Assembly (NCBI GenBank): GCA_038496445.1
Contig: JALMLS010000541.1
Span: 62,001-126,000, forward strand
DNA length: 64,000 bases
Source of the DNA: Trichosphaerium sp. ATCC 40318
Lineage: Eukaryota; Protista; Tubulinea
Direction: 5' to 3'
Of the stretch, positions 9,189 through 56,061 are shown piece by piece. The first letter of the stretch is position 1; every line of letters starts with the position of its first letter. The notes under the pieces were generated by a model, which had not been told where the DNA came from, did no database searches, and was given only the letters and a program-made list of their open reading frames with translations. The position numbers and the translations under genes were made by a program.

Positions 9189-10302
9189 TTATTTTACATA
9201 TTTTTTTATAAAGTTTAGAAACTCTTTCTTTATCCAATCACGTGGTGCTCCATTATAACTTGGAAAATGATTAATATCTACAATAACCCACTTCTTAGTG
9301 CTATTATCATATAAAAGATCCATCTCTAAGAGAGTAACACCAAGTAACTTCTTTGAAGTTAAAGCTATTTCTTGTAATAAACTATCAGGCACCTTAACTA
9401 CTTTTTCTATCTCTTCATGACTTAACATTTTTTTACAAAAATCTCTTGTAACAAAGTTAAACCGTTCTCTATCACATGAACCGACTTTAAATAAAGGTAT
9501 TGATGTACGATAAGAAGAAACAGCATTACCATCAATACCAAAAAGTTTTACAATGTAGCTATCATGAGGTACGTATCCTTGAACAATAACTGTTTTTTTT
9601 TCATTCTCTGAAAGATATCTTTCCATATCGGTCCTATTGAATATAATAGATATTGTATGATTATCAGCTGATAGTGGCTTTGCTAGAAGAGGATATTTTG
9701 TGTTTTCTGGGATTGATGACAAGTCTCCATTGATTACTGAAAAAGAAATCGGATTTTGAAGTTTTTTGTTGGTGTTTGCCTTGTTAACTGACTCTGTAAC
9801 GTCGTTGATGCATTTCAACATTGTAGTGCGTAGTGACGTATACTTTTGACGGTCAATTGGGTCGATTAGCCAAGGTAAAGCAGCGTTTAGTGTAGTGGAT
9901 GCTTCAAGTTGTTTAACGCACTCCAATAGCTTTATGGCGCTAGTGCGTTGCTAGAGCGCTGTTAAAGAAGACGTTCCTACCAAATTTGTATGTAAAACTT
10001 ACCTCCGTAGAGATATGAGAATCAATAGTTTCGTTAGCGATAGCAACCTCCTTGCGCAAGTGGAGGAACATCAAATCGTAGTTTTTATTAGCGCTTATGC
10101 GGAGTAACGACGGTTCTAATCCAGCATCCTCTTTAGTTATACGCTGAATAGAAAATCCATGGGTGCTAGGAACGCATTCGTCAATAATTTACTATCAGCG
10201 CGTATACGACGTGTAGTACCTTCCTTGGGCGTCTAGATAGTCTAATACGTCACTCAGTACACTCAAGCGCGCTTTTGGAGCGAGAAAGGCTACGTTAATC
10301 AT
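9189..10302 (-). CDS. ITPK1: Inositol-tetrakisphosphate 1-kinase (ATP-grasp fold), multi-exon
   Basis: YPLLAKP...NHTISIIFN, VQGYVPHDSYIVKLF and VDINHFPSY match ITPK1 family motifs. Short 5' exons start at ATG 10302. Confidence 0.8.
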
Positions 10303-11033
10303 GATTTGCGTTTGTATTTCTTAAAAGTTGACCCAGCAGTGTTACCGTCGCTTCTTTTTGTAGCCTCGCTTAACATAGAATGTAAATTGGATAACCATGA
10401 TAAAAAAGATTAGTGCTCCCAACGTCGCTTCAATATCGTAGTCCAAAGTTTCACATTGTGTACTTTGTCACGTTGTGAGCATAATGCGGTATAATGACCT
10501 GATTGAAATAAAAAACTTAAACTCTTTGCTTTGTAACTTCCGTAAGCTGAGGAAGAGTTTTATTACTTGTTCAAGTAACAGTACCCAGCGTTGTTTTAAA
10601 CAAAATAAGCCGCAAACACGCTAAACCACAATTTTTTTGATGTTGTAGTTTACTAGTATACATTCATTTTGGTTTGCTTTGAAGGTACATCGAGTAAGCA
10701 TCATTCAGTATGCATGAGGCCTCTCGAGGTATCTCTGACTTTGTACTCGTTACCAACCTCGGGGTCAGTCAATGTAATTGTGCGCTTCACAGCAAACATC
10801 CAGCCAACGCGCTGGCTCCTTCAAGAAATTGTTTCGGGGATAGGACATGGCTATAAACGCCTGACTGCGCAATGCCCGCCACGTAAATGTATTCATGCAT
10901 GTGTTCGATAAGCTCTTTTGTTGCAATTTTAAGTTTTTAGCGTGAAACTTGCCTTGTTCAGTGAAATAGTTTAAACGTTTTTTTGGTATTTATTTGGAAT
11001 ACTCTGTACCACAACACCAAAGACATAGCTTTA

Positions 11034-11106
11034 AGCCCACTGCGAGTTTCGATCTCGCTACCATCTGGTCAAAAGCCAAACGCTCTTCCGATTGAGCTAA
11101 GTGGGC
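11034..11106 (-). tRNA. tRNA-Lys(UUU), intronless, with atypical residues (G37, A54, U73)
   Basis: GCCCACT TA GCTC AATCGGAA GAGC G TTTGG CTTTTGA CCAGA TGGTA GCGAG ATCGAAA CTCGC AGTGGGC T folds into a full cloverleaf (7/4/5/5-bp stems) with anticodon TTT. Confidence 0.85.
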
Positions 11107-11493
11107 TACTTGTTGTATACAGGTAGTAAAGTATTGAAAGAGTTTGTTTCCTTTTTACATAACATTGGCAAAATGACAAAAGCACATAATAATAGAAGGG
11201 CACATGTTGTATCGAAAAGCCACTTTGCCAAAATCATACTAACACACTCGCTGCCGGAGGTGGAACCTTTATACAACTGACCTTTTATTTTAGAAAAACT
11301 TGGAAGTTGTTGGTGTTATCGAACTAACAAGGTACTATGATTAGTTTACCGCTGTTTATGTCAATGAGAGGATAAAAGTACACTGTAATATCTGTATGGC
11401 GTTGTTAAAACATATACCAGTTGTACTTAAAACTCACAACAATCAGACAGTTGGTATATTGGCGAAACTTTTTTTTATTTTATTAAGCGAAGA

Positions 11494-14400
11494 TTAAGCT
11501 TTTTTTGAAAAGGTGTAGCGAACAGTAGGTCCATTAACATCTTCTCCTCCATCCAAGTTTTCATACGTAACCACAAGGTCAACATACTCCATTTTATTAG
11601 AACCTCTGATCAAGGCACTAATTCTAAAACGAAGAAATAAGAAAAAAACCTTTAACTCAAGCGAAAAAAAAAACCAAGAAAACTACGAACTTCTTTGGCA
11701 ATCTCTTCTTGTGTCCAGGCATAAAGGCAGCGTAAACCATCTTGACACCTTGTATAACACCTAATAATAAAAAAACATTAAATTAACTTATGCATACAAT
11801 TCAAAGAAACTTTTTTTTTGGAAATGAAGAAATGGTCACCTGTGACTTTAAGGTTATAACGACCCTTGAAGTAATTACAAAATTCTTCAAGAGTAGGATA
11901 TTCATCCTCACTAAATTGCCATTGATCCCATACAGTATAGTAAGAGTCTCCAGTAATCTTTGTCTATAAAACATGTCAACGTAAAATCAAGGTACACAAA
12001 AAACCTATTATCAAGTGAATGCCGTACCTTCTTTGGTGGCGCAGGCTCAGAAAGAGTCATTAAAGGAAGACCAAGGTTAACAAAAGCATTCTTGAAAGCT
12101 TCAAGTTTCAATCCAATAACCAATTTCATCAACTCAGTAGACACCTAAGCACGTGTTAACAAGATAGAAAATCCAAAAAAAAGAAAAAAAAAAGTACATA
12201 CAAGTCCAGCAACTGACGTTGTAGTTGTAGCTATAGCAGGAATAATACGTCCAGATATTCTCTTACACTCCATACGATCAGAAGGTTCAATACCGTAACA
12301 ACTTGCACGCAAGTTTGCAGCAGCAGTGATGAAATCAATATGGTGATTACTATCATCATCCTACATCAACAATAAGATTCTTGCATTGCGTTGTAGATAG
12401 ATTGCTTGGTACCTTTTCAAAGTCTTCTACTTGTGGTGTAAATGGCGCTAATCCCATGATATACTCCTTAAGAGAATTTAATGTTGTCTTGTATGCATCA
12501 TCATCTACAGGCTCTGCAACAGCTTCTTCCTTTCCTTTTGTTTCATCTGTTTCAATTTTCTTATTCTTTGGTTTCCATTCAGGCAATACAACGCTTTCGC
12601 AAGCCTAGCAAGGACTAGATAAATACATACGAACACACATCATCAATTTGACAAAATGATTGTTATGTCATTGGTGCTTATTGATGAGATGGAGACAAAG
12701 TTTGATGACTTACTTGTTTAATCAAGTTCAAATCAGTGCTTGTTTCAACATTAAAGATATGAGCATAGATTGAAGCAGTGCTTGTTACGAAATCCAAATG
12801 ATGTTTGTTATTGATATCAAAAACAAGTGGCGTAGGAGGACGCTTTGGTAATGTCCAGAACTTACCTATTCAAAAATGACGTTAGTACAATAAAAGAAAT
12901 CATTAAAGAACTACGTACTGCCGTCTTTTACACGCATATCTAGAGGAAATACATGAAGCAGATTCTTCATTGTTCTGAAGAAATATCCTTCAAACTTATG
13001 ACGCGCAAGTTGAACACAATCAGCGAAATTAGCTGGTCGTTTTTCGACATTTTTCAATACGAACTTGAGCGACTTAAAGAGCGGACGACTTTGACCAGAT
13101 TCGATGCCCTAAACAGTCACGTCACATCAATACTGCCTGGTTATAAAATGATGATGTGTACCTGTACATATTCTTCTGGATTACCGTAAAAAGAGGCAAG
13201 CTCAGAAGGCTTTCCAGCAAACAAAGACTCGAACTTATCACGTGCCCATTGGATACAATGATCAATTTTAGCTGGGAAAGATTTTATAGTACAGAAAGGT
13301 ACACCAACCTCTGGTGGATCACGTTGATCTTGGTACTAAACCGAAAGAGTCAGAATATAGTTTCATATTGCAATTGAAAATAATGGCATTTGTCAATGGA
13401 AAGGAGACCTTTCTCAAATTGGAGGGTGCGTACTGTTTCAGTGAGGTGCGGCATGATTACTTGTACATGAGCCTTAGTACCAAGAGTACCAGACTCGAGT
13501 AGAGGCTTGAGGTTCGTAATACAACGTTGATCTACATACATACGAGCCTACAATAAACAATAACATAAGTATTTGCTATCGAGTGTTTATACAAGTATAA
13601 ATTACCTGAACATTATCTAATGCATTTATAATAATATCTGTTGATTTGAAGAACGCATTATCATATTTACTCTCGGTCTTTGGTTCTATTCTGTCAAGAT
13701 TTGCATTGACCTTTAGACTTGGATTCATTGCCTTAGCAGCAGCCGCAGCAGTGCTCGATTTTGGAGACTATAATGAGTATTAGAATGGTATGTAATTAAC
13801 GTATAAATAAGGCGTACTTGGATATCTTTTTCGCGGAATAGAAATTGTCTATTAAGATTTGAAGTTTCAATAAGATCATTGTCTGTTAATGTAACTAGAC
13901 CGTTCTCTCCAGCGCCAATACCCATCATAGCATAATTCTTCATCATTTCACAACCAATAGCGCCAGCACCAATCTATAAATTGGTTACAAAGTCAAAAAA
14001 TATAAGAAGAAATTTGGAAAAAAGAGTTCTTTAGTACCATAAACACTTTTTGGTTCAACAATTTCTGGTTGACCTTATTACCAATACAAATTATTTGTGC
14101 ATCATATCTCGATTTAACAGGTGCATAATCGCTCATATCTTCTGGTATTTCAGCAGGTAAAAGTTCAGTACAGTCCAAATACAACTAACAAATAAGAAAG
14201 TAAGAAAAAAATAAGTAACAAACAGAAGAAAAACACTGCTGCACAAACACCAACGTACCCATTGCTTCAATGGAGTGAATTTACCGCTGCACGCTTTAAG
14301 AACTTCTTGACCAACAAATCCACCAAGGAAAGCAGTATTACCAATAATATTACCACGTGCAGTAAAAGAAAGATACTTAATTAATTTTTCATCTAATTTT

Positions 14401-16125: not shown

Positions 16126-17661
16126 TTAGTCGTTTTTAGCCTCCTTTGCTGCCTTTTCTTCCTCTGTTTCCTCGTTGTAAGCAAGTAAATTCTTTACATC
16201 ACCCATAACAACAGCTAACAAGAAAGAACCTCCAATACAAGCTGGTACAAGGTACAATAGAGCAGGCTACAAAGAAAATATGTCAGAAATCATTAATTGA
16301 AAGGATAACTAAGTTGTTGTACCTGAGCATGTTTGAAAAAGTGCATGACACCAATAGTAGTAATCAAACCAAGAGCGTATGAGATGAAGGTAACCCAAAA
16401 GTATGTTTTGGAGAAAGAAGCTTTCATTCCTTGGCGGAATCTATCATAACGGAGAAGAAGTGCTACAAAGACACCTATATCATACTTTTTTAGATGCTGT
16501 AGAACAAGGCGAGGTATAATACGCACCTGGAATAACGATATCACCCAAACCAAGCATGGAAAATTGAAATATCTCATCAGGACCAGCAAATATGTTCTTT
16601 GGGAAGAGTAGTTTGATAGGAGCATCAAATTTCTTTGCAACGGTAACCATGACATCAGTACCGAATACCCAGAAGATATCATAAAAGAACAAACCGCCCT
16701 AATGCCGTAACGTCAACAATAAAAAAAAAATAAAAGAAAAGTGTCATATTTAAATTTGAGTTCGTGTTGCGCTGAACAGGCTTCACGCCGACCTGCGGTC
16801 TGTGTGATGCAATTGATCGATAGGAAACGTACCAATAGGATACAACCGACGCTGTACTTTCCAAGAGAGATCAAAGCAATAGCTTGAACGCAAAAGGCGA
16901 GTCCGAGAATGTTGTTTGCAATCCAGTGTTTTGTTACGTAATACCATCCACATAGAGCAAGAGCAATAACAAAAGCCATGAGATCAATAGCATCAATGGT
17001 AATTTCAGTAGGTTCTATAGCGCGTGAGCAAAGTTATGGCGATATAAAAATAAGAAAAAGTCGACAAGGACGGATTTTCTTTTTTTTTCGGAATAAAGCG
17101 GTTTTTATGTACCAGTACATCCTGGGAAGGTCATTTTGGTATTTACGAAACCACTCTTCTTTTGTTGTTCTGTTCTCTCTGATGAACCATAAAATAACTG
17201 CCTGTGACGTGTAAATCAAAAAATCATCAAAAAGCGGTTAAATGTGTCGATTAAGCATGTCATTGACGTTTGGGTAGCGTGTGGAAAGTTTTTGACAAGT
17301 AGGTACCTCAATGCTCCGTCAGCAAGGCCATAAACCATAAAAAGCGCCAATAACACGAAATAGCACGTCAAGAGGAAGTTGATGTACTCCTCTTTGAAGA
17401 GTTTGAACACCATGTACAATCCAAACAAAACGCAGCTTCCAAACACTGGAAACATCCAAGCGTCTTTGGAGCTCATTTTTTCAACGAGCTAGAAGATTTT
17501 AAGTTAATTTCAACCAAAACAAGCCTATATGGTATTACCTTGTTCTGCATTAACGAGACGTGGGATCCAAAGTAAATTGGAATGAGTGCCATACTAATGA
17601 TGGCTCCATAGGCCGCGAGCAAGTCAGGATCATCAAGTAACTCCTTAAACGCTTGTTCCAT
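16126..17661 (-). CDS. SPP: Signal peptide peptidase (presenilin-type aspartyl intramembrane protease), multi-exon
   Basis: Catalytic YD (FYDIFWVFGTDVMVTVAK), GLGD (FSMLGLGDIVIPG) and QPALLYLVP motifs. Confidence 0.93.
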
Positions 17662-18077
17662 GTTAGCGGGCTGCGTTTTAACGCTGTTTAAATTAGTCAA
17701 ATGTGGTCTCCAGTGTTTAATTTGACGTTTCACAGCTAGAACTCATGCAAGTTGTTCTACTAAATTCGTGTGATGTTCGATTACAAAAATTGGCGTCAGC
17801 TAGCGATAAATTTGGTCTATTAGTCGGAAAAGTACTGCAAACGCTTTTATTACGCATTGATTTAGTTTACAGATACGCAGAAAACAAGTTTGGTGTGTAG
17901 ATATTGTACCAACACCAAAAGGTTCGTTAACATCTCAAAATAGCTCTCATTGAGTGTACTAAGGTAAAGGCGGCACTATACAAACCTCGTGGCTCTTGGC
18001 ACATGCCAAACAAGTTCGTTAAAAAACTTTGTGAAACGCAAAGGAAGTTTACTTTTTCTTTCCACTAGGTATCTCAA

Positions 18078-19625
18078 ATGTGTTGTGGAGGGCTATCTGT
18101 TATCGGTATTTGTTTCAGTACTTCTAGTAGTACTGCGAAGAGTGTCGGTGTGTCTATACAAAGCAAATGTGAAAGGCTACATCAGATGTTATCGAAGGTA
18201 GCTACTTTCTTTGAATGTATTCCAACAGTTGATGTTTTGCTATTAGTGTAGATCAAGTGTTTTACCTCCTCTAGACAGACGATGTATATCTTGTTTATGT
18301 CATACGGATAATAGGCAGTATCCTTTTTTTTTCTCATCCTATGCAGCCCACGTGATTTTGTTCTTTAACGAGAGATGGACCTGTTTTTAAATTGCATAGT
18401 TTTGGCTCTGATCGGTCACTGAAAATACAGAAGCCTCAAATATGCACAATACAACGTAAGAATTTCTTACCTAGCTTGAGAATAATAACATCATCATGGC
18501 CTGTATATTTTCAGGTACCTATGGTAAAGTGAGTAACATACGTTATTTGATGTGGTAGCTAATATTTCTGCTAAGATCGAATAGCACTGTGCAACAACAA
18601 ATTGAAGTACGTATTCTGTTTTGGTTGTACGTTTTCCAAACTCAGTCTTTTACATAGAATGCTACCAATGAATATATCAAGGTAATAAGCAATTCTTTGG
18701 CAGTTATTGATGGAACACTACTGAGCGGTAACGAGCTCAAACAACCTCTGGTGAAGTTGAAAAAAATCAACGCAGTTCTGTTTACGTTAAGTTTAGAAAA
18801 AATCTTGGTTTGACAGCGATGGTGTTGCTCATGTACAATTTATTTCATCCTTAAATACATGCTCTAATAGAATAAGCAAAAAATGCAAGGGTACATTTTC
18901 TATAAATACGTTGATAAGCTCTCGAACATATGTTTTCGATAAAACGAATGTAGAAGCTGTTATAAAGGTAGGTGTTTTATTTGTTAGTGTTAACACTCTC
19001 TAAACAGTTTTATTAGTCAGTTCAAAGTGATATCATCACAAGTTTTCTAGCAAGGCTAAGTGTATTTTTTGATGAGCTTGAGAGTATTGAGATAGAAGAA
19101 CCTGAGGATGAAGTTCAAACAGAAAACAAACGAGTGTCAAAACAAAAATTTTACAATCCGTTCAAAAGAAAGGCACCCTCAATGCCAAGTGCATATTGGG
19201 GTCTCCCACGTAGAGTTTATATATCATCTAAAAGTGATGCGGGTCAATTTTATTGTGACTATGCTGGAGTAGAAGACGAAACAGAGGTGAAATAATTTAC
19301 TCAACAAGAATGTGTGCTGATTTTTTTACATAGGATGTTTTGTCTCGATGCAAGTCTATCCTTTCTATTAATCTTAACACTGATGATATCAATCATTTAG
19401 AACCACCAATATCTACTTCTAGTACGCTACTAAGACCAAGTACATCTTTACTGAGTTTCTTTATTAGTACAACTCGCAGATTTAGTTCAAGTTGAGGATA
19501 AGTCGTCTTCAACTAAAGATGTTATTCCACATAAAGTGAAGAGTTCCAGATTCCTTAAAATCGCTTTGGCTATCATTGTTGCTTTCACATCCATATTATT
19601 CTATTATTTGTATAAGTACTTATAA
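18078..19625 (+). CDS. Hypothetical intron-rich protein with C-terminal transmembrane anchor (start uncertain)
   Basis: Several short GT-AG-bounded exons. The terminal exon encodes RFLKIALAIIVAFTSILFYYLYKYL*. Confidence 0.4.
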
Positions 19626-21027: not shown

Positions 21028-21950
21028 TCAAGCTGGAATTAGTCTACAATTGCGGTATATTGTACCCCGGTAAATAAACCAAGGATATTCTTCGCCTTCT
21101 AGGCAATCAGCTTGCTCAATATTTTCGAGTAAGCCTTTCCAGCACGACAGGTTCACGGTGTAAGAAGTGATATTTGTTGGATTTAGAGCGCTGTCAATTT
21201 TAGTGAGGATTCCTCCGTTATTGCTGAGACCCCATATAGCGCCGTTACAAAAACTTAAACCATTAGTTTCGAGATTTGATTTTACTAATGTCCAACTTCC
21301 ATCTGAATCACGAAAATATAAGTCAGTACTTTGGCTAAGAGCAAAGACTTTTCCATCAGGATCAACAGCGGTCTGATACATGTCTATATCTGAATTCTAC
21401 ACAATGGTGAGTATGCTTTTTTGGTAGAAACAGTGTAAGTAGGCTTACATATGTCCATTGGTTGTCCCAGTGATAAAGAAAACTATTGAAACCGACACCC
21501 CATAATGTACCAGCATCTGTTGCGGATAACGTGAGCAGTTGTCCTGATAAGTATACCCAATGGGTACCCTGTGGTAGTTGTGGCTGGTAAAGAAAGTAAG
21601 CACCACTTGTAGTAATTAAAACAAAGTTTGTAATGTACCGTTACACCAGCTCTTCGGTAGACCTTTGTGTCTGTTCCTATTGCAAACACGTGTTGTGATG
21701 ACGCATGAATTGAGTGCATCCTTCCGGGGATTTGCACCCAGCCCACATTGTTTATTAACACGTACACCCAATAGTTGTATGCTACCACATAGGTACCAAG
21801 CGTAGATCTCGACATTTGTCTAGCTCCGATGTGGTGAGGGAACCTGTAAAGTGGATCGCATTGAAGCATTTTCAAATCGCGTGTAGTGTAGCTTGATACA
21901 AGTGCAGCGAAACTGATAAAACATAATAAAGCAAGGAAGAGGTGCTTCAT
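21028..21950 (-). CDS. Secreted tectonin-like (TECPR-type beta-propeller, lectin-like) protein, copy A1, 3 exons
   Basis: Signal peptide MKHLFLALLCFISFAALVSS, then repeats of type W-x-x-IPG-x-M/L-x-x-I...VFAIGTD-x-KVYRR and W-G-V-x-x-N. Paralogous to three other copies in the window. Confidence 0.72.
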
Positions 21951-22329
21951 GGTTGTTGGTATGAATTGAATGGTTGAAATTGTATGTTAACACAAACACT
22001 GTGATTCAATTTGTTTTGTTCTCGTAAAACCACGAGGATGGTAGCATAAACATCAGTCTAGTACAACATGTTTATAACTTGTAATTGAGAAGTAGTTGTG
22101 TTTTTTATTTGGAGTTCTTACTCCTAACACTACGGTAATTGGTAGAATACCAAAGAAATACCATAGTAGTTGATAGATTATGTTTGTTGTTTTGTTTCCC
22201 ATTCAGCAAAAATCCTACATAGTATTTCGTTCCAACACGCAGTTAACAAAACTGCGTATGTTAAATTGGTGTTGAGTTATTTTTGACTTTTTCAAAGCCC
22301 TAGCGAGAAAGTACGTTTGTGTAAATTAA

Positions 22330-24038
22330 GGGCGTTCTCCTGGATTAAGAGAATAGCTTGAAATTTGCCAATTTTTACACTGGTTATTCTACCCATATAG
22401 GGCTTCCTCCTTTGAGCTCGAGAGCAACACAGGTTGCCTTTAAAAAATGCACAAAAAAACCCTGTTTAAACTCACTTTACATTTCCGAAAACACTCTAAA
22501 ACATATTTCACCACACTATAAACGCGTTTTAGACGATTTTACATCATTTCTTAGTATAAAACCAGTATTCAAACTTCAGTTTTGGTTTTTATGCTTTCCA
22601 TAGCGATGGTGATAATATACCAGAGTTCAACGCCAATTCAACTGTGTGTAAAAAAGAAAAATTACTAAATTAAGATTTCACTTTCTAAAATAAGAAATTC
22701 AATCTTTAAACCTTATATTCGAAGCCAAAACCTTTTGAAATCATACCAAATGGGTGTGGATGCTTTATTGGTAAGTTTTTAGAGCAATACAAGGAGGTGT
22801 AACAAAGCCAAAAAAACAACCAAACTTCAGCAAATACATACCCTAAACTGTATATTCGAAGCTGAATTTAGTTTTACTGCTTCTACTTAGTGTGTTTTAT
22901 GTATAGGATGAGTATCATTACTATTGGAGGAGGTGTAAAATAGTCAATATGAATCCTAGAGAACATAAATAGTTAGAGGGCTCAATAGACAACTGACAAA
23001 GACTTTATTTAAAAAAGTATACAATTAGGTAATTCAATATCTTTAAAGCTATGGCCAACACATACACCTGTTTGATAACATTGGTTTCTGCTCAAGTTAA
23101 CAACAGCAGGTTCAAAAGTAATGTGGTCACAATTAAAGCACACTTTGTTATGGCATAGGTGACTACCATCAAGCTTACTTCTATTGTAGCCAGACCAAAC
23201 AATGTACTTGTCATCTCCAATAAACCCTTTTGCCTCAGTATAAATGGTTATCCCGGCTTTACAGTACATTGCCAAGTGATGTAATTTATACATTTTGCCA
23301 TTAAGCCTAGCCCTAGAGTAGCCATTATCATCCAGTTTTTTGTTTGCAGTAAGTTCAAAGCAACCATTGTCTAACATGAAACATTAATATTGAATTATAA
23401 AAAGTTAGAGGTCTCATAAGAAAACCACCGAGGACTCATAAAATAAATAAAAAAAAATTTCTTTATACCTGTTATCTTGTAGTTTCTCTTGAGTAGTGCA
23501 AGCTTGAGCCTAGCAATTTCAAGAGGAACAAGCCTCAAGTCTTTGGCTAAAAACCTTTGTTGTTCATGGAATTCATACATTGGCCGCTGGAAAAACTTGC
23601 TCCTTTGGTACATAATGTCATCTAAACTTTGTCGAGAACCTTGATAAGAATAAAGTCTTGGCATTCTCTTAATAGTAGGTAATCTTGCAAGTAGTTCTCC
23701 TGGTTTATCCATTTGATGTTGATTAGGTGGTTCTGTAGGTGTTATGGATTAAGTTACGCACCTGTTACCATATTCCGTGAGCTGGCGTTATTTCCGCTCT
23801 TTATTCCGCTTAATTACATACTTAGAGGGCTCATAAGGAAACTACAGTAGACCAAACATAATTAGCGGGTAATAGCTGTAATTATACCGCCAATTACTCC
23901 ACGAACATACGAATTCGCTTATTGGAGAAATAGGCGGTATAATTACACCCGCAAATTGCCCCGCTCTCGACCATGTGCACGTGCGTTATGATTTAACGCT
24001 GCCAATGGTCATACGAAGTAAAAACTTAGAGGACGCCC
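22330..24038 (-). mobile_element. 1,709-bp TIR element with TTAA target-site duplication (Kolobok-like ends, non-autonomous) carrying a His-Cys box endonuclease gene
   Basis: TTAA at 22326-22329 and 24039-24042. Termini GGGCGTTCTC and (reverse complement) GGGCGTCCTC match 9/10. The paralogous locus has the flanks joined over a single TTAA at 54867-54870. Confidence 0.85.
23009..23712 (-). CDS. His-Cys box (I-PpoI-like, His-Me finger) endonuclease, about 201 aa, 2 exons
   Basis: Exon 1 23712-23469, intron 23468-23371 (GTATAA...TTAG), exon 2 23370-23009 join in frame (KIT-D-NGCFEL). Motifs GC, NGY, LHHL and SHLCHNKVCFNCDHITFEPAVVNLSRNQC...CVGH...CI. Confidence 0.88.
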
Positions 24039-24042
24039 TTAA

Positions 24043-24322
24043 GTGAAACTCGGGTTTCACGACGCATCTCTAAAAATACCATCGTTTAATATATCACGTG
24101 TCATCTCTAAAGAAAGTGTAAATCCGTGATTCATTGTATCTACAAAGCCAGGAGTTCTAGCTTTGCAAAAAATACTTGGCGGTGTGAACAAATCCACGTT
24201 CACAAGCAATTGAACTTATCGCTGGTTCTACAAGGAGGTTCTGGTTACAAAAAATGATACTGTCAGTTGAATATTTGAACAAGCGGAACTTTTAGAGATG
24301 CCTCGTGAAACCCGAGTTTCAC
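24043..24322. mobile_element. MITE-like inverted-repeat element (locus A copy) abutting the endonuclease element
   Basis: 33-bp inverted repeats at 24043-24075 and 24290-24322 (32/33 identical), each containing the palindrome GTGAAAC-N4-GTTTCAC. Non-coding interior; homologous to 54579-54875. Confidence 0.65.
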
Positions 24323-24663
24323 TTTTTGCTAGTGGACCCCTCCAGTCAAATAACAGATATATGACCTTCAATCCATAGTATTGTCATGTAAACTATCGAG
24401 GTTACAAAATACTACTTTTACAGATTACAAACTACAAATGCTTTAAAAAGCCAGCTTCGTTTGGAGTACAGTCTTGTAAAAACTACAAAGTTCACGTAAA
24501 ACGTAGAAAAAGATTAGGGAACGCTCCGATGAATAAAACACGTGGCACTAGACTGATGTTTATGCTTTTAATGTCCGCGTGGTTTTAGGAGAAACAATAC
24601 AACAAAATGAATCACAGTGGTTGTGAACATACAACTTCAACCATTCAATTCATACCATCAACC

Positions 24664-25632
24664 ATGAAGCACCTCTTCGTTGCTTTATTATGCTTCATCA
24701 GTTTCGCTGTACTTGCATCAAGCTACATTACACGCGATATAAAAATGTTAACTTGTACTCGACACCCTTTCCCTTATGCTTCCATTGCCGGAGTTAAACA
24801 TGTGGCATCCTCTCCGACTCACACATGGGTGGTAGCAACCGACCACACAATACATATGTTACAGGATGATGGAACTTGGCTTAAAGTGTTTGGAGGGCTA
24901 GACACAATTGCTGTATCACCTCCTGGTACTAGCATGCACGTTTTTGGAATAGGCACTGACGACAAGGTCTACTCTAGACTTGGTATAACGGTAAGTCAAG
25001 CTTTATATTTATTACTACCGTGTTGTTCTTACTTTCTTCACCAGCCACAACTACCACAGGGTAATCTTTGGCACTATACTTTAGGACAACTTCGTATGCT
25101 ATCTGCGACCAATGATGGTAAATTATGGGGTGTTGGTACAAATGATATTGTTTATCACTGGGACAACCAATGGACATATGTAAGTGTAATACTGCTACAA
25201 GGAATATACTGATATTGTCTTTTTCAGAATTTAGAGCTCGCCATGCTTGAGGTTGCTGTTGACACTGGCAATACAGTTTATGGTCTTACGCATAGTGGAG
25301 ACTTGTATGTTATGAAGAATGATAAGTGGTTGCTTGTAAAATCAAAGCTAGAAGCGAAAGGTATAACGGTTTGCAATGATATTATTTGGGGTGTAGGAGA
25401 TAATGGAGCTCTCACAAAAATTGACAACGCTTACAACCCAAACTACTTAACTTCATATGTAATAGAGGAAACAGCATGCTTGCGCAGGATAACTGTTTCT
25501 CAAGTTAGTTGTAACCACGATGAGGCATTCCCGTGGTTTGTATCAAATGGCGTACTATATCATCAATGTACATTGCCACCCGTAACAAGTGCACCACTCG
25601 CACCTACAGACCCACCAACAGCAGTGCCATAG
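24664..25632 (+). CDS. Secreted tectonin-like protein, copy A2 (exons 24664-24990, 25045-25179, 25228-25632), short Pro/Thr tail
   Basis: Signal peptide, tectonin-type repeats, two phase-0 GT-AG introns joining the track ORFs in frame. Confidence 0.75.
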
Positions 25633-26757
25633 AGAAATAAACGTTGTTTAATGTAAATTTTGATTCAGTCTTTCTGTGCTTAGGTTTTTGATTTGAGGTT
25701 GCTGGTTTTAGTACAAAATTGGCTTAGCAATTGTAACACGTGGTATACTCAACGTAGTGAATAAGCTTAAAATTGTAGTTTATACCCTTGTATTAGTTTA
25801 GTCTCATAATCAGCCGATTTAATACCTGTAACAGCCAATATTGACTATTGTATTGACGAAAATTGTGCTGACTTACAAAAACAGTTTCACGTGCTCAAAC
25901 AAATTATAGTTGAACAGCTCTTATGATTCATTACTAGCTACTAGTTAAGTTATTAGATTGAGTGTTGGTCTTCTAATTTTGAAGGAGCTTGTGCACTATT
26001 TTTCGCCTGTCAGTTGGTAGTTTTTTTTCACTGATTTTTTTTACAACTCTTTTTGACGTTTGTAGTTTTACCTTAGTAAATGTCTCTTGTAGTTTCCTAC
26101 TAGCTGTTATGGCGTGATTGCACGTTTTTGAAGGTATTTAAACTTGCCCTTTCGTAGAGTGAAAGAGGTATGTTGTAGCGTCCTACGAACAGTGTAGATA
26201 CCAGAATTCATCGCTGCTGAGTTTTGGTTCGAGTGTACTACGTGGCCACAAGCAAGGGATCAAAAGCGCTTGAGTGTGTTAACCAGTTGAAAGGGAGCTC
26301 ATTGGTAGCAATGTAGATTAAAAAAAGTTCTATGTTCACCGTCTTTTTAGTATTGAATATATTTATTGTTATTTTAAAAAGTTGTGTACTAAGGGTTTAT
26401 AACCTCTTGTAGAGGTATATCTTTGAGTAAAAGAGTGATAGTGTTCGGTTTTTTAACCTTCGCTGTTTCTATTGGTTACCACTCGAGCGTATTTTAATAT
26501 CTCAATTGGCTATTGTCGTTGTGCTACAAGCCTTGCACATAGAATCACTGGCCCTTTTGAATGTATATCCTGGGCTTTTGCTACACGTTTAGTAGGTGGC
26601 TACTAAGTTGAGGATTAGACCTACCATACAATACTTTTTTTCTTACCTGTACACAGGAACTGTGTTCTTTGGTATCGCTTTCGGTATCTTGCACTTGTCG
26701 TTTAGTGTGGTAGCTGTTCATTAGGTTTATGGATTATCTAGTGTGAGCACATAAGAA

Positions 26758-27323
26758 TTATTTATAAATAGGCACGAAGAAGTACCAGTATATCTCTGTA
26801 AGAGAGTTGCAAAAGGTTGAAAAGCCTCCTTGTGACCATTCCATACTATCTTCAATCAATGCCATAACGCTCAAGTTCTCTTCAGGTTCTAGAGACATAT
26901 CGCAAGTATATGAGCAGTTTATATCAATGTCCATGTCCGTTGACATTTCAAGTGACGACTGAAGGTCATCTACGTCAATCTTTTTGGTGTGATTCTTTTC
27001 TTGTATTTGTGTTTTAGGCTTAGGTTCGTGCTTGTTGTTGAGCTTTCTCTTCTTTTTAGGCGGTTCACTTGATTTATTTTGTAAAGAAGCGAATGGTTCT
27101 AGAACGTATAAGATACGGTGGACAGAAGAGAGCGTTGTTGGGCGTTGTATGTTTAAACTATTAAGTTGTAGCCTTTGATCACTTTTTTTTCGAATCAGCT
27201 CAGAAAAAGAATGGCAACAGCTCTTTGTATCGCTCATAAACATACCTCCCGGTAGCGCTCGTTTTTTAGCTTCAGCTAGTTTGTTCAGAGTAAGGTACAT
27301 CGGAAACAACTCAAAGGCCATGT
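26758..27323 (-). CDS. Hypothetical protein with SV40-type NLS (PPKKKRK); may have an upstream exon at 27390-27565
   Basis: Long uninterrupted ORF with a basic NLS and an acidic C-terminal half. No family recognised. Confidence 0.5.
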
Positions 27324-28554
27324 TGTTGATGCTGTAGTAGAGCGTAAGGGCGCGCTTATTCTTTGTTTTGATTTTTATATTCAAAAGATTTACCTGCTAT
27401 CCAAACATGGCATCATAGGGTTCGTGAAGCACGGGTGGTCCATAATCTCGCTCTTACAAAGGTTGAAGGTACGCTCCATAAAATTGTTGTAAGAATAGAG
27501 CTCTCTCTTAGCTGTATTGTAAGCATCTATCTTTGACGTCTTTGTTTCGTTGCTGCAGTACATGAAGATGGTAATTTTTGATGTGACTAAGTGTGTTGAT
27601 GGTCGCTTGTGCACGTGCTTTTAGATAGTTCTCGATTGACGCAATGGTCGGATTGGTTTACCAAAGGTGTGTCAAACAAGAATTAAGGCTTACAAGAACG
27701 ATTATTTTAACTTACACAACCAAGACACATTTATTAGGTTTTTGCCTTTTAGACACACATTCAATAAATACTTTTGTATTTTCTATCCCTTCACAAAACC
27801 CGCTGCGTTACCCTGTAAAAAGGCATGATATAAGCTAGTTATGTTACGTGTACACAAAGTTAGACGACAGAAAGACCTAGGAAGTACCTAAATCGCGTCA
27901 CAATACCCGAAGGCCATAAAATTAGCACGAACGAAATTCAACTTATTTACGACATAAACACCGTGGGGATACTAAAAAAAACAATGTAGGGAAAGATAGT
28001 TGTGTTAAAAGAAAATATGGCCCGGAGAAAACTGATTCGGTTTTAAGATAAATTTAATAAAAATTCTAAGACTAACAATCTCATAATACGGCAACGCAAA
28101 ATGGAACGCTCTGAATAGATGTAAGAGAGTTTATCTAGACCATTTTAAAGCAATAGTCTTAAATTGTTAACGTAATTAAGGTTTTCGCCAAAATAAGTTC
28201 CAAAAAACCAGTCACGTGATTTATTAAAGTGTTTACAAGATAGCGAGTGCGTAAATTTATCCCTGATAGTAATCTTAATTTCTTGGGAGCTTTTGGTTCC
28301 CTAGATTATCCGTATATTGCAATAAACTGACCTCCACTGCGGCTGACGGCGTAACATGAAAACACTAAGGTCGTTTAGCCGTTTTCTACAACTGTTGTGG
28401 AACACAAAAACTGGCCAAACCTTACAGTACTACACTGCGATACTGGAAGAGTGTTTGAGCTTATACAACTATTTACGGCGCTGAATACAACACAAAAACA
28501 CTATTCAATAATCGTCACGTCGCCATACTTGAACTCTGCCTGTTTTCTTTCTTA

Positions 28555-53213: not shown

Positions 53214-54109
53214 TCACAATGGTGACGGTGAAGAATAAGGTCCCATATCAGTTGGTGGCCATGAAGGTGGTGGCTGTGTAGGTGGAGACGTTGTTGGCGT
53301 TACTGTAGTCGGCAACGTTGTTGGTATTTGTGTAGGTGCTGTAGGTGCTGTAGGTGGTGCACTCGTTGTACATTGATTATATAGTACGCCATTTGATACA
53401 AACCAAGGGAATTCCTCACCTTGGTTACAACTAACTTGAGAAACTGAGACAGATAACATACATGTGTTTCTTTCCTCAATTGCATACGAAGTTATGTGAC
53501 TCGGGTTTTGAGTGCTGTTAATTCTTGTGAGAGCTCCACTATCTCCTACGCCCCAAATAACATCATTGCAAACCGTTATACCTTTCGCTTCTAGCTTTGA
53601 TTTTACAAGCAACCACTTATCATTCTTCATAACATACAAGTCTCCACTATGCGTAAGACCATAAACTGTATTGCCAGTGTCAACAGCAACCTCAAGCATA
53701 GCTCGCTCTAAATTCTGAAAAAAGACAATGTCAGTATATTCCTAGAAGCACTATGTAGTAATAAATATAAAGCTTGACTTACCGTTATACCAAGTCTAGA
53801 GTAGACCTTGTCGTCAGTGCCTGTTCCAAAAACGTGCATGTTAGTACCAGGAGGTGATACAGCAATTGTGTCTAGCCCTCCAAACACTTTAAGCCAAGTT
53901 CCATCATCCTGTAACATATGTATTGTATGGTCGGTTGCTACCACCCATGTGTGAGTCGGAGAGGATGCCACATGTTTAACTCCGGCAATGGAAGCATAAG
54001 GGAAAGGGTGTCGAGTACAAGTTAACATTTTTATATCACGCGTAATGTAGCTTGATGCAAGTACAGCGAAACTGATGAAGCACAATAAAGCAAGGAAGAG
54101 GTGCTTCAT
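53214..54109 (-). CDS. Secreted tectonin-like protein, copy B2, lacking exon 2, with extended Pro/Thr tail
   Basis: Near-identical to 24664-25632, but the 5' half of intron 1 is fused to the 3' half of intron 2; splicing exon 1 to exon 3 stays in frame. Confidence 0.7.
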
Positions 54110-54327
54110 GGTTGATAGTATGAAATGAATGATTGAAGTTGTATGTTCACAACCACTGTGATTCATTTTGTTGTATTGTTTCTCCTAAAACCACGTGGAC
54201 ATTAAAAGCATAAACAAGTCTAGCACCGCGTGTTTTATTCACCGGAGCGTTCCCTAATCTTTTTCTACGTTTTATGTGAAGTTTGTAGTTTTTACAAGAC
54301 TGTACTCCCAAACGAAGCTGGCTACTA

Positions 54328-54520
54328 TTTCAAGCGTTTGTAGTTTGTAATCTGCAAAAGTAGTATTTTGAAACCTCGGTAGTTTACATGATAATACTAT
54401 GGATTTGTTATACTTCTATCCATCTCCATACAAAGTTGTGTCTTTCAAGCATTTGTTGCAAGCTGCAAAAGTAGTATTTTGAAACCTCGGTAGTTTACAT
54501 GATAATACTATGGACTTGTT
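54328..54520. repeat. Local direct duplication of about 80 bp (54328-54409 and 54443-54520)
   Basis: CTGCAAAAGTAGTATTTTGAAACCTCGGTAGTTTACATGATAATACTATGGA occurs twice; the paralogous region near 24370-24440 has one copy. Confidence 0.9.
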
Positions 54521-54578
54521 TGAAGGCTATAATTCTGTTTCTCCAATCTAGAGAGCGAGCTTGCGAGCGTTCGTTTCC

Positions 54579-54875
54579 GTAAATTAAGTGAAACTATGTT
54601 CCCGAGGATCCCTAAAAATTCCGGTTTATCCAAAATGATGCTAAAAGCACAATTAATCATGTAGTTTTAACTCCTAAATATTGAAGCTTGTGAAAGTGAG
54701 GTTAACTTCGGCTGCACTAAAAATCAAGATCACAAAACACTTGATAATTCTTGTATGTTTAGAACTCCCTATTAAGTACATACAATGCCACGGATGTATA
54801 TTTGGTTAGAGATGACACGTGAAACAATAGTATTTTTAGAGACTGATCGTGAAAACCATATTTCACTTAATTTAC
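54579..54875. mobile_element. MITE-like inverted-repeat element (locus B copy) containing the empty TTAA site
   Basis: Perfect 15-bp inverted repeat GTAAATTAAGTGAAA (54579-54593) / TTTCACTTAATTTAC (54861-54875). Both ends align in inverted orientation to the ends of 24043-24322. Confidence 0.65.
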
Positions 54876-55135
54876 CTAAACGTAATTTCTCGCCAATGAG
54901 CTTCTAAAATGAAACACTCATGATATTAAAACCTACAGTTTCCATCTGTCTGATGTCTAAAAATACCCTGTAGGATTTTTTATGAACACGAAAATACTAC
55001 AAACCCAATCGTCAATTACGTAGTATAACTTTTGGTAGTGCTGCCGTAATCACCGTGGCATTAGGAGTAAGAACTCCAAAAAAATGAATCACAACTTACT
55101 TCTCAACCAACAACATTTAATACATACCATCAACC

Positions 55136-56061
55136 ATGAAGCACCTCTTCCTCACTTTATTATGCTGCATCAGTTTCGCTGTACTCATATCAAGCTACAC
55201 CACACGTGATATGGAAATGCTTGCTTGTTCTAGAGTAAATTTCCCTAATCAGTCTGGAGTACGACACATTGCAAGATCTATACTTGGTACATATGTGGTA
55301 GCAAACGACTATTCAATACACCTGCTAAAAAACGATGGAACCTGGGTGATCATTCCCGGAGGTCTAAAAACAATTGCTGCATCATCTCTACATGTATTTG
55401 GAACAGGCACTGACAACAAAGTCTACCGAAGAGTTGGTGTAACGGTACATTGCACACTTTATGTTTTGTTACTCCATTCTTACTTTCTTCACCAGCCACA
55501 ACTACCAGAGGGTACTACTTGGGAATTGTTACCCGGAAAACTTCGCATGTTATCTGGAACTAATACTGGTGAAATATGGGGTGTCGGTACAAATTATGCT
55601 GTGTATCACTGGACCAGCCAATGGGCTCATGTAAGTCTACAAACAACGATAGAATATACTAACATTATTTTTAGATGGCAGGAGGCATGCTTGAGACCGC
55701 TGTTGACCCTGTAGGAAACGTCTTTGCTCTAAGCCAAAACAATGATTTGTACTATCGTCACATTGATGCTACAGGAGCTGGAACTTGGGTTGTTATAAAA
55801 TCAAAGCTTGAAGCACATGGGTTAAGTCTTTGTAATGGCGCTATTTGGGGAGTCGGAAATACTGGAGCCCTCACAAAAATTGACAGCGCTCTAAATCCAA
55901 CAAAGATAACTTCTTATGTAGTCAATGAAGGATGGTTGTGCTCACAGGTTAAACTCAATATCTCTCATGTTGCTTGTTTACAAGGTGAATCATTTCCTTG
56001 GATTGTTAACCAAGGCGTGATATACAATCGTTGTAGAATCAATCCAACAACATCACCGTGA
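55136..56061 (+). CDS. Secreted tectonin-like protein, copy B1, 3 exons
   Basis: Signal peptide; WVIIPGGLKTIAAS, HVFGTGTDNKVYRR, WELLPGKLRMLSG and IWGVG repeats; same intron positions as its paralogs. Confidence 0.75.

Follow-up and report, generated by a model that had tools for sequence, protein, structure and literature searches.

Why would a small DNA transposon carry a homing-type endonuclease as its only gene? The question is raised by a 1,709-bp insert (22330-24038) in a 64,000-nucleotide stretch of DNA from Trichosphaerium sp. ATCC 40318 (NCBI GenBank assembly GCA_038496445.1, contig JALMLS010000541.1, positions 62,001 to 126,000 of the forward strand). We refer to this whole stretch as the window and number positions from its first letter. 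The insert lies between two copies of TTAA, is bounded by short terminal inverted repeats (TIRs), and its sole gene is predicted to encode an I-PpoI-like nuclease. The explanation that we favor, and to which we give about an even chance, is that the insert is a non-autonomous TTAA element with Kolobok-type ends that is moved in trans and carries the nuclease as an accessory selfish function.

That the insert arrived as a unit can be read from its own empty site. It sits in the spacer of a head-to-head pair of secreted tectonin-like genes (21028-21950, minus strand, and 24607-25632, plus strand), and an inverted copy of this pair lies at 53.2-56.1 kb. Minus the insert and one TTAA, the filled spacer is colinear with the reverse complement of 54.1-55.1 kb, with 68% identity over the 100 columns left of the junction and 82% over the 100 columns right of it. 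The filled locus reads TTAA (22326-22329), then GGGCGTTCTC ... GAGGACGCCC, then TTAA (24039-24042). At the matching position the paralog reads ...GTAAA-TTAA-GTGAAA..., with a single TTAA (54867-54870). Taken alone, a TTAA joined to a 10-bp inverted repeat is weak evidence: allowing at most one mismatch, five such pairs occur in the window, against ~0.75 expected naively. The case for insertion is strong because the ends match exactly the indel boundaries given by the paralog and because the same terminus-TTAA junction occurs at another locus, described below.

The insert went into the left TTAA duplication of an older miniature inverted-repeat transposable element (MITE) of 280 bp. This MITE is present in both paralogous spacers (24043-24322 and 54588-54866), and its terminal inverted repeats are 35 bp long (GTGAAACTCGGGTTTCACGA...). 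In the paralog both of its flanking TTAA copies survive, and at the filled locus the right one has decayed to TTTT. Its ends begin with GT rather than with two purines (RR), and it represents a second TTAA-targeting family.

The outer 10-bp ends of the 1,709-bp insert are inverse complements at nine of 10 positions (left TIR, 22330-22346, plus strand; outer right TIR, 24022-24038, minus strand). A second right end lies inside the element. Contigs from four public sequencing runs (X1-X4; two organisms, one run apparently an RNA library) match 22696-22964 only, at 98% identity, and continue past 22964 as GCCC-TTAA-TCAAACC... into an unrelated flank. At this other locus, the left part of the element stops with GAGAACGCCC, followed by TTAA. 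Since these contigs leave the element into GCCC-TTAA and unrelated sequence, we conclude that a short, nuclease-less relative occupies a second TTAA site. In the window copy, the corresponding inner right end is a remnant (22952-22964, minus strand; placed from the contigs and from end pairing) whose last four bases, GCCC, are swapped for ATAA. Once GCCC is restored, 15 of the 17 bases of the left TIR are complementary to the inner right end, a closer match than that between the outer ends of the 1,709-bp element; the outer right TIR matches the right end of the short relative at 14 of 17.

The 1,709-bp element is thus bipartite. It consists of a left module (22330-22964, plus strand) that occurs elsewhere, according to the contigs of runs X1-X4, as an independent TIR-bounded unit of ~639 bp (MITE-like or resembling a solo long terminal direct repeat, LTDR), and of a 1.07-kb nuclease module closed by the second right end. 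The left module contains no convincing open reading frame (ORF); its 81-aa ORF (22358-22603) matches no family. The family has at least two insertion sites, and its copies are 98% identical over the 269 bp compared. The two known sites share TTAA alone (TTAA-GTGAAA in the window and TTAA-TCAAACC in the contigs). Sequence from the element turned up in only five sequencing runs, none of which held more than 11% of the sampled words; together they cover 22696-22964 and a 39-nt patch, and no reads fell on the nuclease gene. Since the contig spanning 22696-22964 is also present in run X4, the probable RNA library, that copy of the short relative appears to lie in a transcribed region. Run X4 also holds a contig of a tectonin-like gene (24662-24800) at 97% identity. 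When we scanned metagenomes for the terminus pattern, we obtained 10 chance-level matches, which had neither a second end nor the nuclease.

We detected no LTDRs in the element by self-BLAST, and the local alignment of the left module with the remainder scored no better than shuffled sequence. With no long direct repeat shared by the left module and the other part, an LTDR-INT-LTDR structure was rejected. An initial annotation of this locus, made from the letters alone, had described a TTAA-flanked insert of 1,709 bp with 10-bp TIRs, ends of the Kolobok rather than the piggyBac kind, no LTDRs such as those of KolobokP elements, and an empty site in the same window. Each of these observations held up, including the GG...CC form of the ends and the exact 21-of-25 match in the left flank of the empty site. 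The bipartite build, with a left part that occurs independently and has better-matching inverted repeats, had been missed, as had the identity of the TTAA that was hit.

The nuclease gene lies on the minus strand and fills ~40% of the element. In the two-exon model, which we consider probable from the sequence, exon 1 (23712-23469, minus strand) is an open frame of 244 nt, or 81 codons plus one base, and exon 2 (23370-23009, minus strand) is 362 nt long and ends in a TAA stop codon (23009-23011). The two are separated by a predicted GT..AG spliceosomal intron of 98 nt (23468-23371, minus strand) and join in phase to give a 201-aa product. An AATAAA at 23009-23004 overlaps the stop codon. An in-frame ATG at 23377 would give an alternative, unspliced product of 122 aa. 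Protein searches detected no homologs of exon 1, which is weakly coding-like: its codon usage is the best of its own six frames and lies near the 95th percentile of random pieces of the window.

Exon 2 holds the whole His-Me finger, or His-Cys-box, domain, as judged by Pfam and by a structure model. It contains the block SHLCHN...C.N..H...N..R..C and matches PF05551 (zf-His_Me_endon) with 42.1 bits against a cut-off of 27 (E 1.2e-10). A sequence search of solved structures returned I-PpoI only, and the active-site block aligned with it residue by residue. Eight residues that are invariant across 50 relatives (S69, H70, C72, C77, H82, E86, N91, and R94) are all kept, as are five near-invariant ones (C3, C97, C103, H106, and C116). 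Adding 82 to these exon-2 numbers gives the positions in the full-length product (S151, H152, C154, C159, H164, E168, N173, R176, C85, C179, C185, H188, and C198). In alignments with I-PpoI and with the 50 relatives, the catalytic His and Asn and the eight Cys/His zinc ligands are present. An AlphaFold model built from the 50-relative alignment had a predicted local distance difference test (pLDDT) score of 93. Its top fold match was I-PpoI (Foldseek probability 0.93; VIA-align Z 6.4 over 91 residues), followed by I-HmuI (Z 5.3) and then by Smad MH1 and NFI domains (Z ≤3.4). Sequence and model together identify the predicted product as an I-PpoI-like nuclease of the His-Cys-box/His-Me finger type. 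Since all catalytic and zinc residues are kept and the model is confidently I-PpoI-like, the enzyme looks intact.

We found no transposase beside it. The element has no meaningful ORF other than the nuclease gene, no transposase is present among the Pfam-scanned ORFs of the 64-kb window, and tblastn with two PF20700 transposases, taken from the KolobokP-type contigs described next, gave no match in the window. The window also contains no rRNA and no group I intron; the nuclease gene lies between the two tectonin-like genes, inside the TIR element.

Because the pairing of an I-PpoI-like nuclease with a transposon has been described for KolobokP (Kojima & Bao 2022, PMC9587614), the position of the window nuclease relative to the KolobokP nucleases matters for its origin. 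A word-indexed protein search with exon 2 found no match. An exhaustive protein search recovered distant relatives only, the best with 44% identity, and a metagenome scan with the nuclease protein as query yielded no confirmed relative. From the exhaustive search we took 126 nuclease cores and made a quick tree on 125 columns. The window nuclease falls in a 20-member clade with a support of 90 in the Shimodaira-Hasegawa-like approximate likelihood ratio test (SH-aLRT). The members of this clade that we inspected have a linker of ~28-44 aa before SHLCHN, whereas the other 106 sequences mostly have a short linker (usually 17-28 aa) and a C.[IL]W.G motif, which is the motif printed for KolobokP nucleases in Data S4 of PMC9587614.

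We identified KolobokP-type nucleases among the database matches through their genomic context. Three members of the short-linker group (P0040, P0049, and P0012) are encoded convergently with a 613-648-aa "Mutator-like transposase" (PF20700), confirmed by hmmscan for the neighbors of P0049 and P0012 and taken from a precomputed annotation for the neighbor of P0040. This arrangement is the KolobokP architecture. The contigs carrying P0049 assemble as wrap-around units of 4,232 bp. In contrast, contigs with members of the window-nuclease clade have no transposase nearby, and we found no TIR-plus-TTAA signature near the nearest relatives of the window nuclease (L001-L006). A 511-aa neighbor of P0001 was considered as a transposase and rejected, as it is a proline-rich protein. 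By its sequence, and with moderate support, the window nuclease lies outside the clade of the three context-verified KolobokP-type nucleases; since it falls in a separate clade, it does not appear to be nested among the KolobokP nucleases, a placement that the initial annotation had named as fatal to its reading. Further parts of that description also stand: an intact I-PpoI-like gene (open frame, all catalytic and zinc residues) that matches the zf-His_Me_endon profile above cut-off and is the only gene of a TIR/TTAA insertion, with no recognizable transposase among the ORFs, Pfam matches, or tblastn matches of the window.

The searches for relatives returned several further arrangements. On a TARA scaffold, nearest relatives of the window nuclease form tandem pairs (L004, 1173-2640). 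Others (L017 and L018) lie among dense, co-oriented small genes beside PDDEXK and SET-domain genes, a virus-like context. KolobokP-type units from marine metagenomes (L020-L023 and L024) encode a His-Me nuclease of 130-142 aa convergent with a 613-648-aa PF20700 transposase. P0049 was recorded on 13 contigs, and its unit looks like an abundant, recently active element of an unsampled marine animal or protist.

Within the element, the surroundings of the nuclease gene contain repeats that resemble its termini. A 40-nt repeat akin to the right terminus occurs just downstream of the stop codon (copy 1, ..TTAGAGGGCTCA.., 22965-23004, plus strand; pairwise E 0.002), inside the predicted intron (copy 2, 23397-23436), and upstream of the gene (copy 3, 23814-23853, plus strand), all three found by repeat search. 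The presence of this repeat around the gene and in its intron suggests a long shared history of gene and element. A possible inner left-end-like motif, of marginal significance, lies over the first codons of the gene (23694-23707, plus strand; 13 of 14 positions identical to 22334-22347). Located 150-240 bp upstream of the start codon is an imperfect palindrome of ~88 bp (23865-23952), with a perfect center, CGAATTCG. It may act in regulation as a hairpin, represent a very small nested element, or offer the nuclease a symmetric site.

How might such an element have come about and spread? In the explanation that we favor, the element would rely on a DDE transposase from another locus of the genome for movement in trans, and the nuclease would be an accessory selfish function rather than a transposase. 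Our best guess is that the nuclease cleaves a site associated with the element family and that copy number rises as the break is repaired. When two element ends are abutted, they form a 24-bp palindrome with CTTAAG at its center. CTTAAG is also the center of the I-PpoI site. The candidate site, GAGRACGCCC-TTAA-GGGCGTYCTC, could arise wherever a circle or a tandem pair brings two ends together. The nuclease may cut such abutted-end junctions or, alternatively, may cut within family members and so lead to repair-mediated copying. The cut that I-PpoI makes in its semi-palindromic site leaves 3' overhangs of TTAA, and it has been noted that abutted TIRs could form a symmetric target (PMC9587614, Discussion). 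A role for the nuclease in raising copy number through break repair was proposed, not shown, for KolobokP (PMC9587614).

Several points weigh against this explanation. The genes most closely related to that of the nuclease (41-44% identity) stand alone, and no transposon signature was seen near them, so simple gene capture fits equally well. Only one nuclease-bearing copy is known, and we saw no autonomous partner with the ends of the element in the 64 kb covered by the window. No transcript of the nuclease gene was seen in the one RNA-like run, whose contigs show presence only and not absence. The putative superfamily assignment draws on the target-site duplication and two terminal bases only. 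Finally, a TA or TAA/TTA duplication, with ends one base longer, would give an identical empty site; this is unlikely because the full TTAA is present at all three observed junctions.

The main rival to an accessory role is that the nuclease gene is a passenger: a TTAA-type MITE would have captured a host or free-standing His-Cys-box gene, by Pack-type capture or by read-out to a second right end, and the gene would play no part in spread. The layout of the element, in which a complete MITE-like unit with a crippled inner right end is followed by the gene and then by a second right end, is compatible with such an add-on. The free-standing nearest relatives, the placement of the nuclease outside the KolobokP-type clade, and the lack of homologs and weak coding signal of exon 1 also agree with it. 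We nonetheless regard a passenger gene as somewhat unlikely, given an intact frame with every catalytic and zinc residue kept, a terminus-like repeat that brackets the gene and recurs in its intron, and the independent precedent for a nuclease-transposon pairing in KolobokP. At the other extreme, the nuclease might drive mobility itself. A dimer would recognize GAGRACGCCC where it adjoins TTAA and cut both ends of the element so that TTAA 3' overhangs remain; host ligase would then close the donor without a scar and join the element to a second cut TTAA, and no DDE transposase would be needed. The nuclease is indeed the sole gene, with no transposase in the element or the window; I-PpoI leaves TTAA 3' overhangs in the middle of its semi-palindromic site (PMC9587614, Discussion); the abutted ends give a perfect palindrome around CTTAAG; and the paralogous site is a clean, single TTAA. 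Such a pathway is improbable, however, as it needs a cut at a bare TTAA without a half-site, which is unexpected of a long-site nuclease, and as Kolobok transposases fully explain TTAA together with RR/YY ends. The nuclease-less short relative points to mobilization in trans, which fits either model and means that an enzyme in cis is not needed. We know of no nuclease-driven cut-and-paste mechanism for any eukaryotic transposon.

The initial annotation had suggested yet another role, restorative homing, in which the nuclease cuts the empty TTAA allele after excision and repair from a filled copy restores the element, by analogy with TnpB/Fanzor. The concept has been discussed for transposon-borne nucleases (PMC13565253, section 6.3), and the nuclease appears from its sequence to be intact, but outside TTAA the two known insertions have different flanks. 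Since the two sites share only TTAA, a long-site, protein-only nuclease could not recognize empty sites generally, and a nuclease with 4-bp specificity would shred the genome. Protein-only homing nucleases fit only transposons with one specific target (PMC13565253). We therefore find this role quite implausible. There is scarcely any room for the view that nothing moved, that is, that the insert is an ordinary indel relative to the paralog, with TTAA and a 10-bp inverted repeat present by chance. Matches of this kind do occur five times in the window, but in this case the ends fall precisely on the borders of the indel, the empty copy has one TTAA where the filled copy has two, and the same terminus-TTAA is found at an unrelated locus in four runs. 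The paralog alignment and the contigs of runs X1-X4 contradict a non-mobile origin.

The remainder of the window provides the genomic setting. It has few introns and ~37% G+C, and its genes encode tectonin, RasGEF, F-box/LRR, MORN, and GNAT domains. The lineage is thinly sampled, as a conserved UAA transporter shares at most 31-34% identity with database proteins. The divergent secreted tectonin-like pair belongs to an inverted segmental duplication (21028-25632 and 53214-56061). Between the two copies, one gene is 88-95% identical and the other ~70-73%; this uneven divergence suggests gene conversion or differing ages. Each tectonin-like gene consists of two ORFs, indicating an intron or a frameshift. 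At four further places (16293-19371, 9359-11034, 10971-11655, and 24086-28227), TTAA also flanks a stretch whose 10-bp inverted repeats agree at nine of 10 positions. Most of these are probably due to chance; one of them stops at a tRNA-Lys(UUU) gene (11033-11107).

KolobokP is the only eukaryotic transposon lineage that we found described in the literature with a protein-only homing-type nuclease. There the pairing is reported only from animals and always includes a transposase, and the role of the nuclease is conjecture. What is new here is a TTAA-type transposon with an I-PpoI-like nuclease of a different lineage, in another, poorly sampled eukaryote, and without a transposase or LTDRs. This suggests either repeated origins of the nuclease-transposon pairing or a far greater age than assumed. 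With a single gene, a pair of short ends, and an empty site that occurs naturally, the element is a very small and clean test object, in which one can ask whether the nuclease cuts abutted ends, triggers repair-mediated copying, or is a mere passenger. If it is true that the nuclease drives mobility itself, the element would represent a new transposition mechanism.

How does the element compare with known systems? Kolobok transposons are characterized by TTAA duplications and 5'-RR...YY-3' ends, unlike piggyBac (PMC9587614; PMC6004289). The window element has TTAA on both sides and once in the empty site, TTAA also follows the right junction of the second family member, and the termini are GGGCG...CGCCC, not 5'-CC...GG-3'. 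The DDE transposase of Kolobok is absent from the element. TTAA is also the target of piggyBac, but neither the GGG...CCC termini nor the lack of a transposase fits that superfamily. Non-autonomous Kolobok elements and T2-MITEs (PMC6004289) share with the window element the TTAA target, purine-purine termini, the lack of a transposase, and presumed mobilization in trans; they carry no gene, whereas the window element has an intact nuclease gene. TnpB/Fanzor nucleases (PMC13565253) are likewise accessory, transposon-borne enzymes rather than transposases, and nuclease-only elements exist among them (IS1341-type, for example). However, they are RNA-guided and of the RuvC type, whereas the window enzyme would be a protein-only His-Me finger nuclease with no guide RNA to follow changing flanks.

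With I-PpoI and other His-Cys-box homing endonucleases, the window nuclease shares PF05551, the predicted fold, the catalytic His and Asn, and the eight zinc ligands. It differs in lying outside group I introns and ribosomal DNA, inside a TIR transposon, and its gene is RNA polymerase II-like, with a predicted spliceosomal intron, an AATAAA, and an extra N-terminal exon of 81 aa. Pack-type TIR elements (Pack-MULE-like) resemble the window element in being non-autonomous and in having host-like gene content between their ends. Genes captured by Pack-type elements are usually fragments or decaying copies, whereas the window gene is complete and bracketed by terminus-like repeats.

KolobokP has been reported from seven animal phyla, with no target preference (Kojima & Bao 2022, PMC9587614). 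Its elements encode a DDE transposase and, convergently, an I-PpoI-like nuclease, and they have LTDRs of ~450 or ~660 bp with TIRs of their own (11-18 bp in the text and as many as 25 in Table S1; PMC9587614). One of them, KolobokP-H1_MyEd (Table S1, PMC9587614), is 2,664 bp long, too short for a transposase, and may be a nuclease-only derivative. The window element differs from KolobokP in having neither a transposase nor a second LTDR, in that both observed insertions of its family are at TTAA, and in a nuclease that falls in another clade and has a 39-aa linker rather than one of ~19-24 aa. It is like KolobokP in its type of nuclease, which is I-PpoI-like; in a sub-unit that has its own short inverted repeats and also occurs alone; and in the dimensions of that sub-unit, as the 639-bp left module is near the ~650-690-bp class of LTDRs and its 17-bp TIR is within their range.

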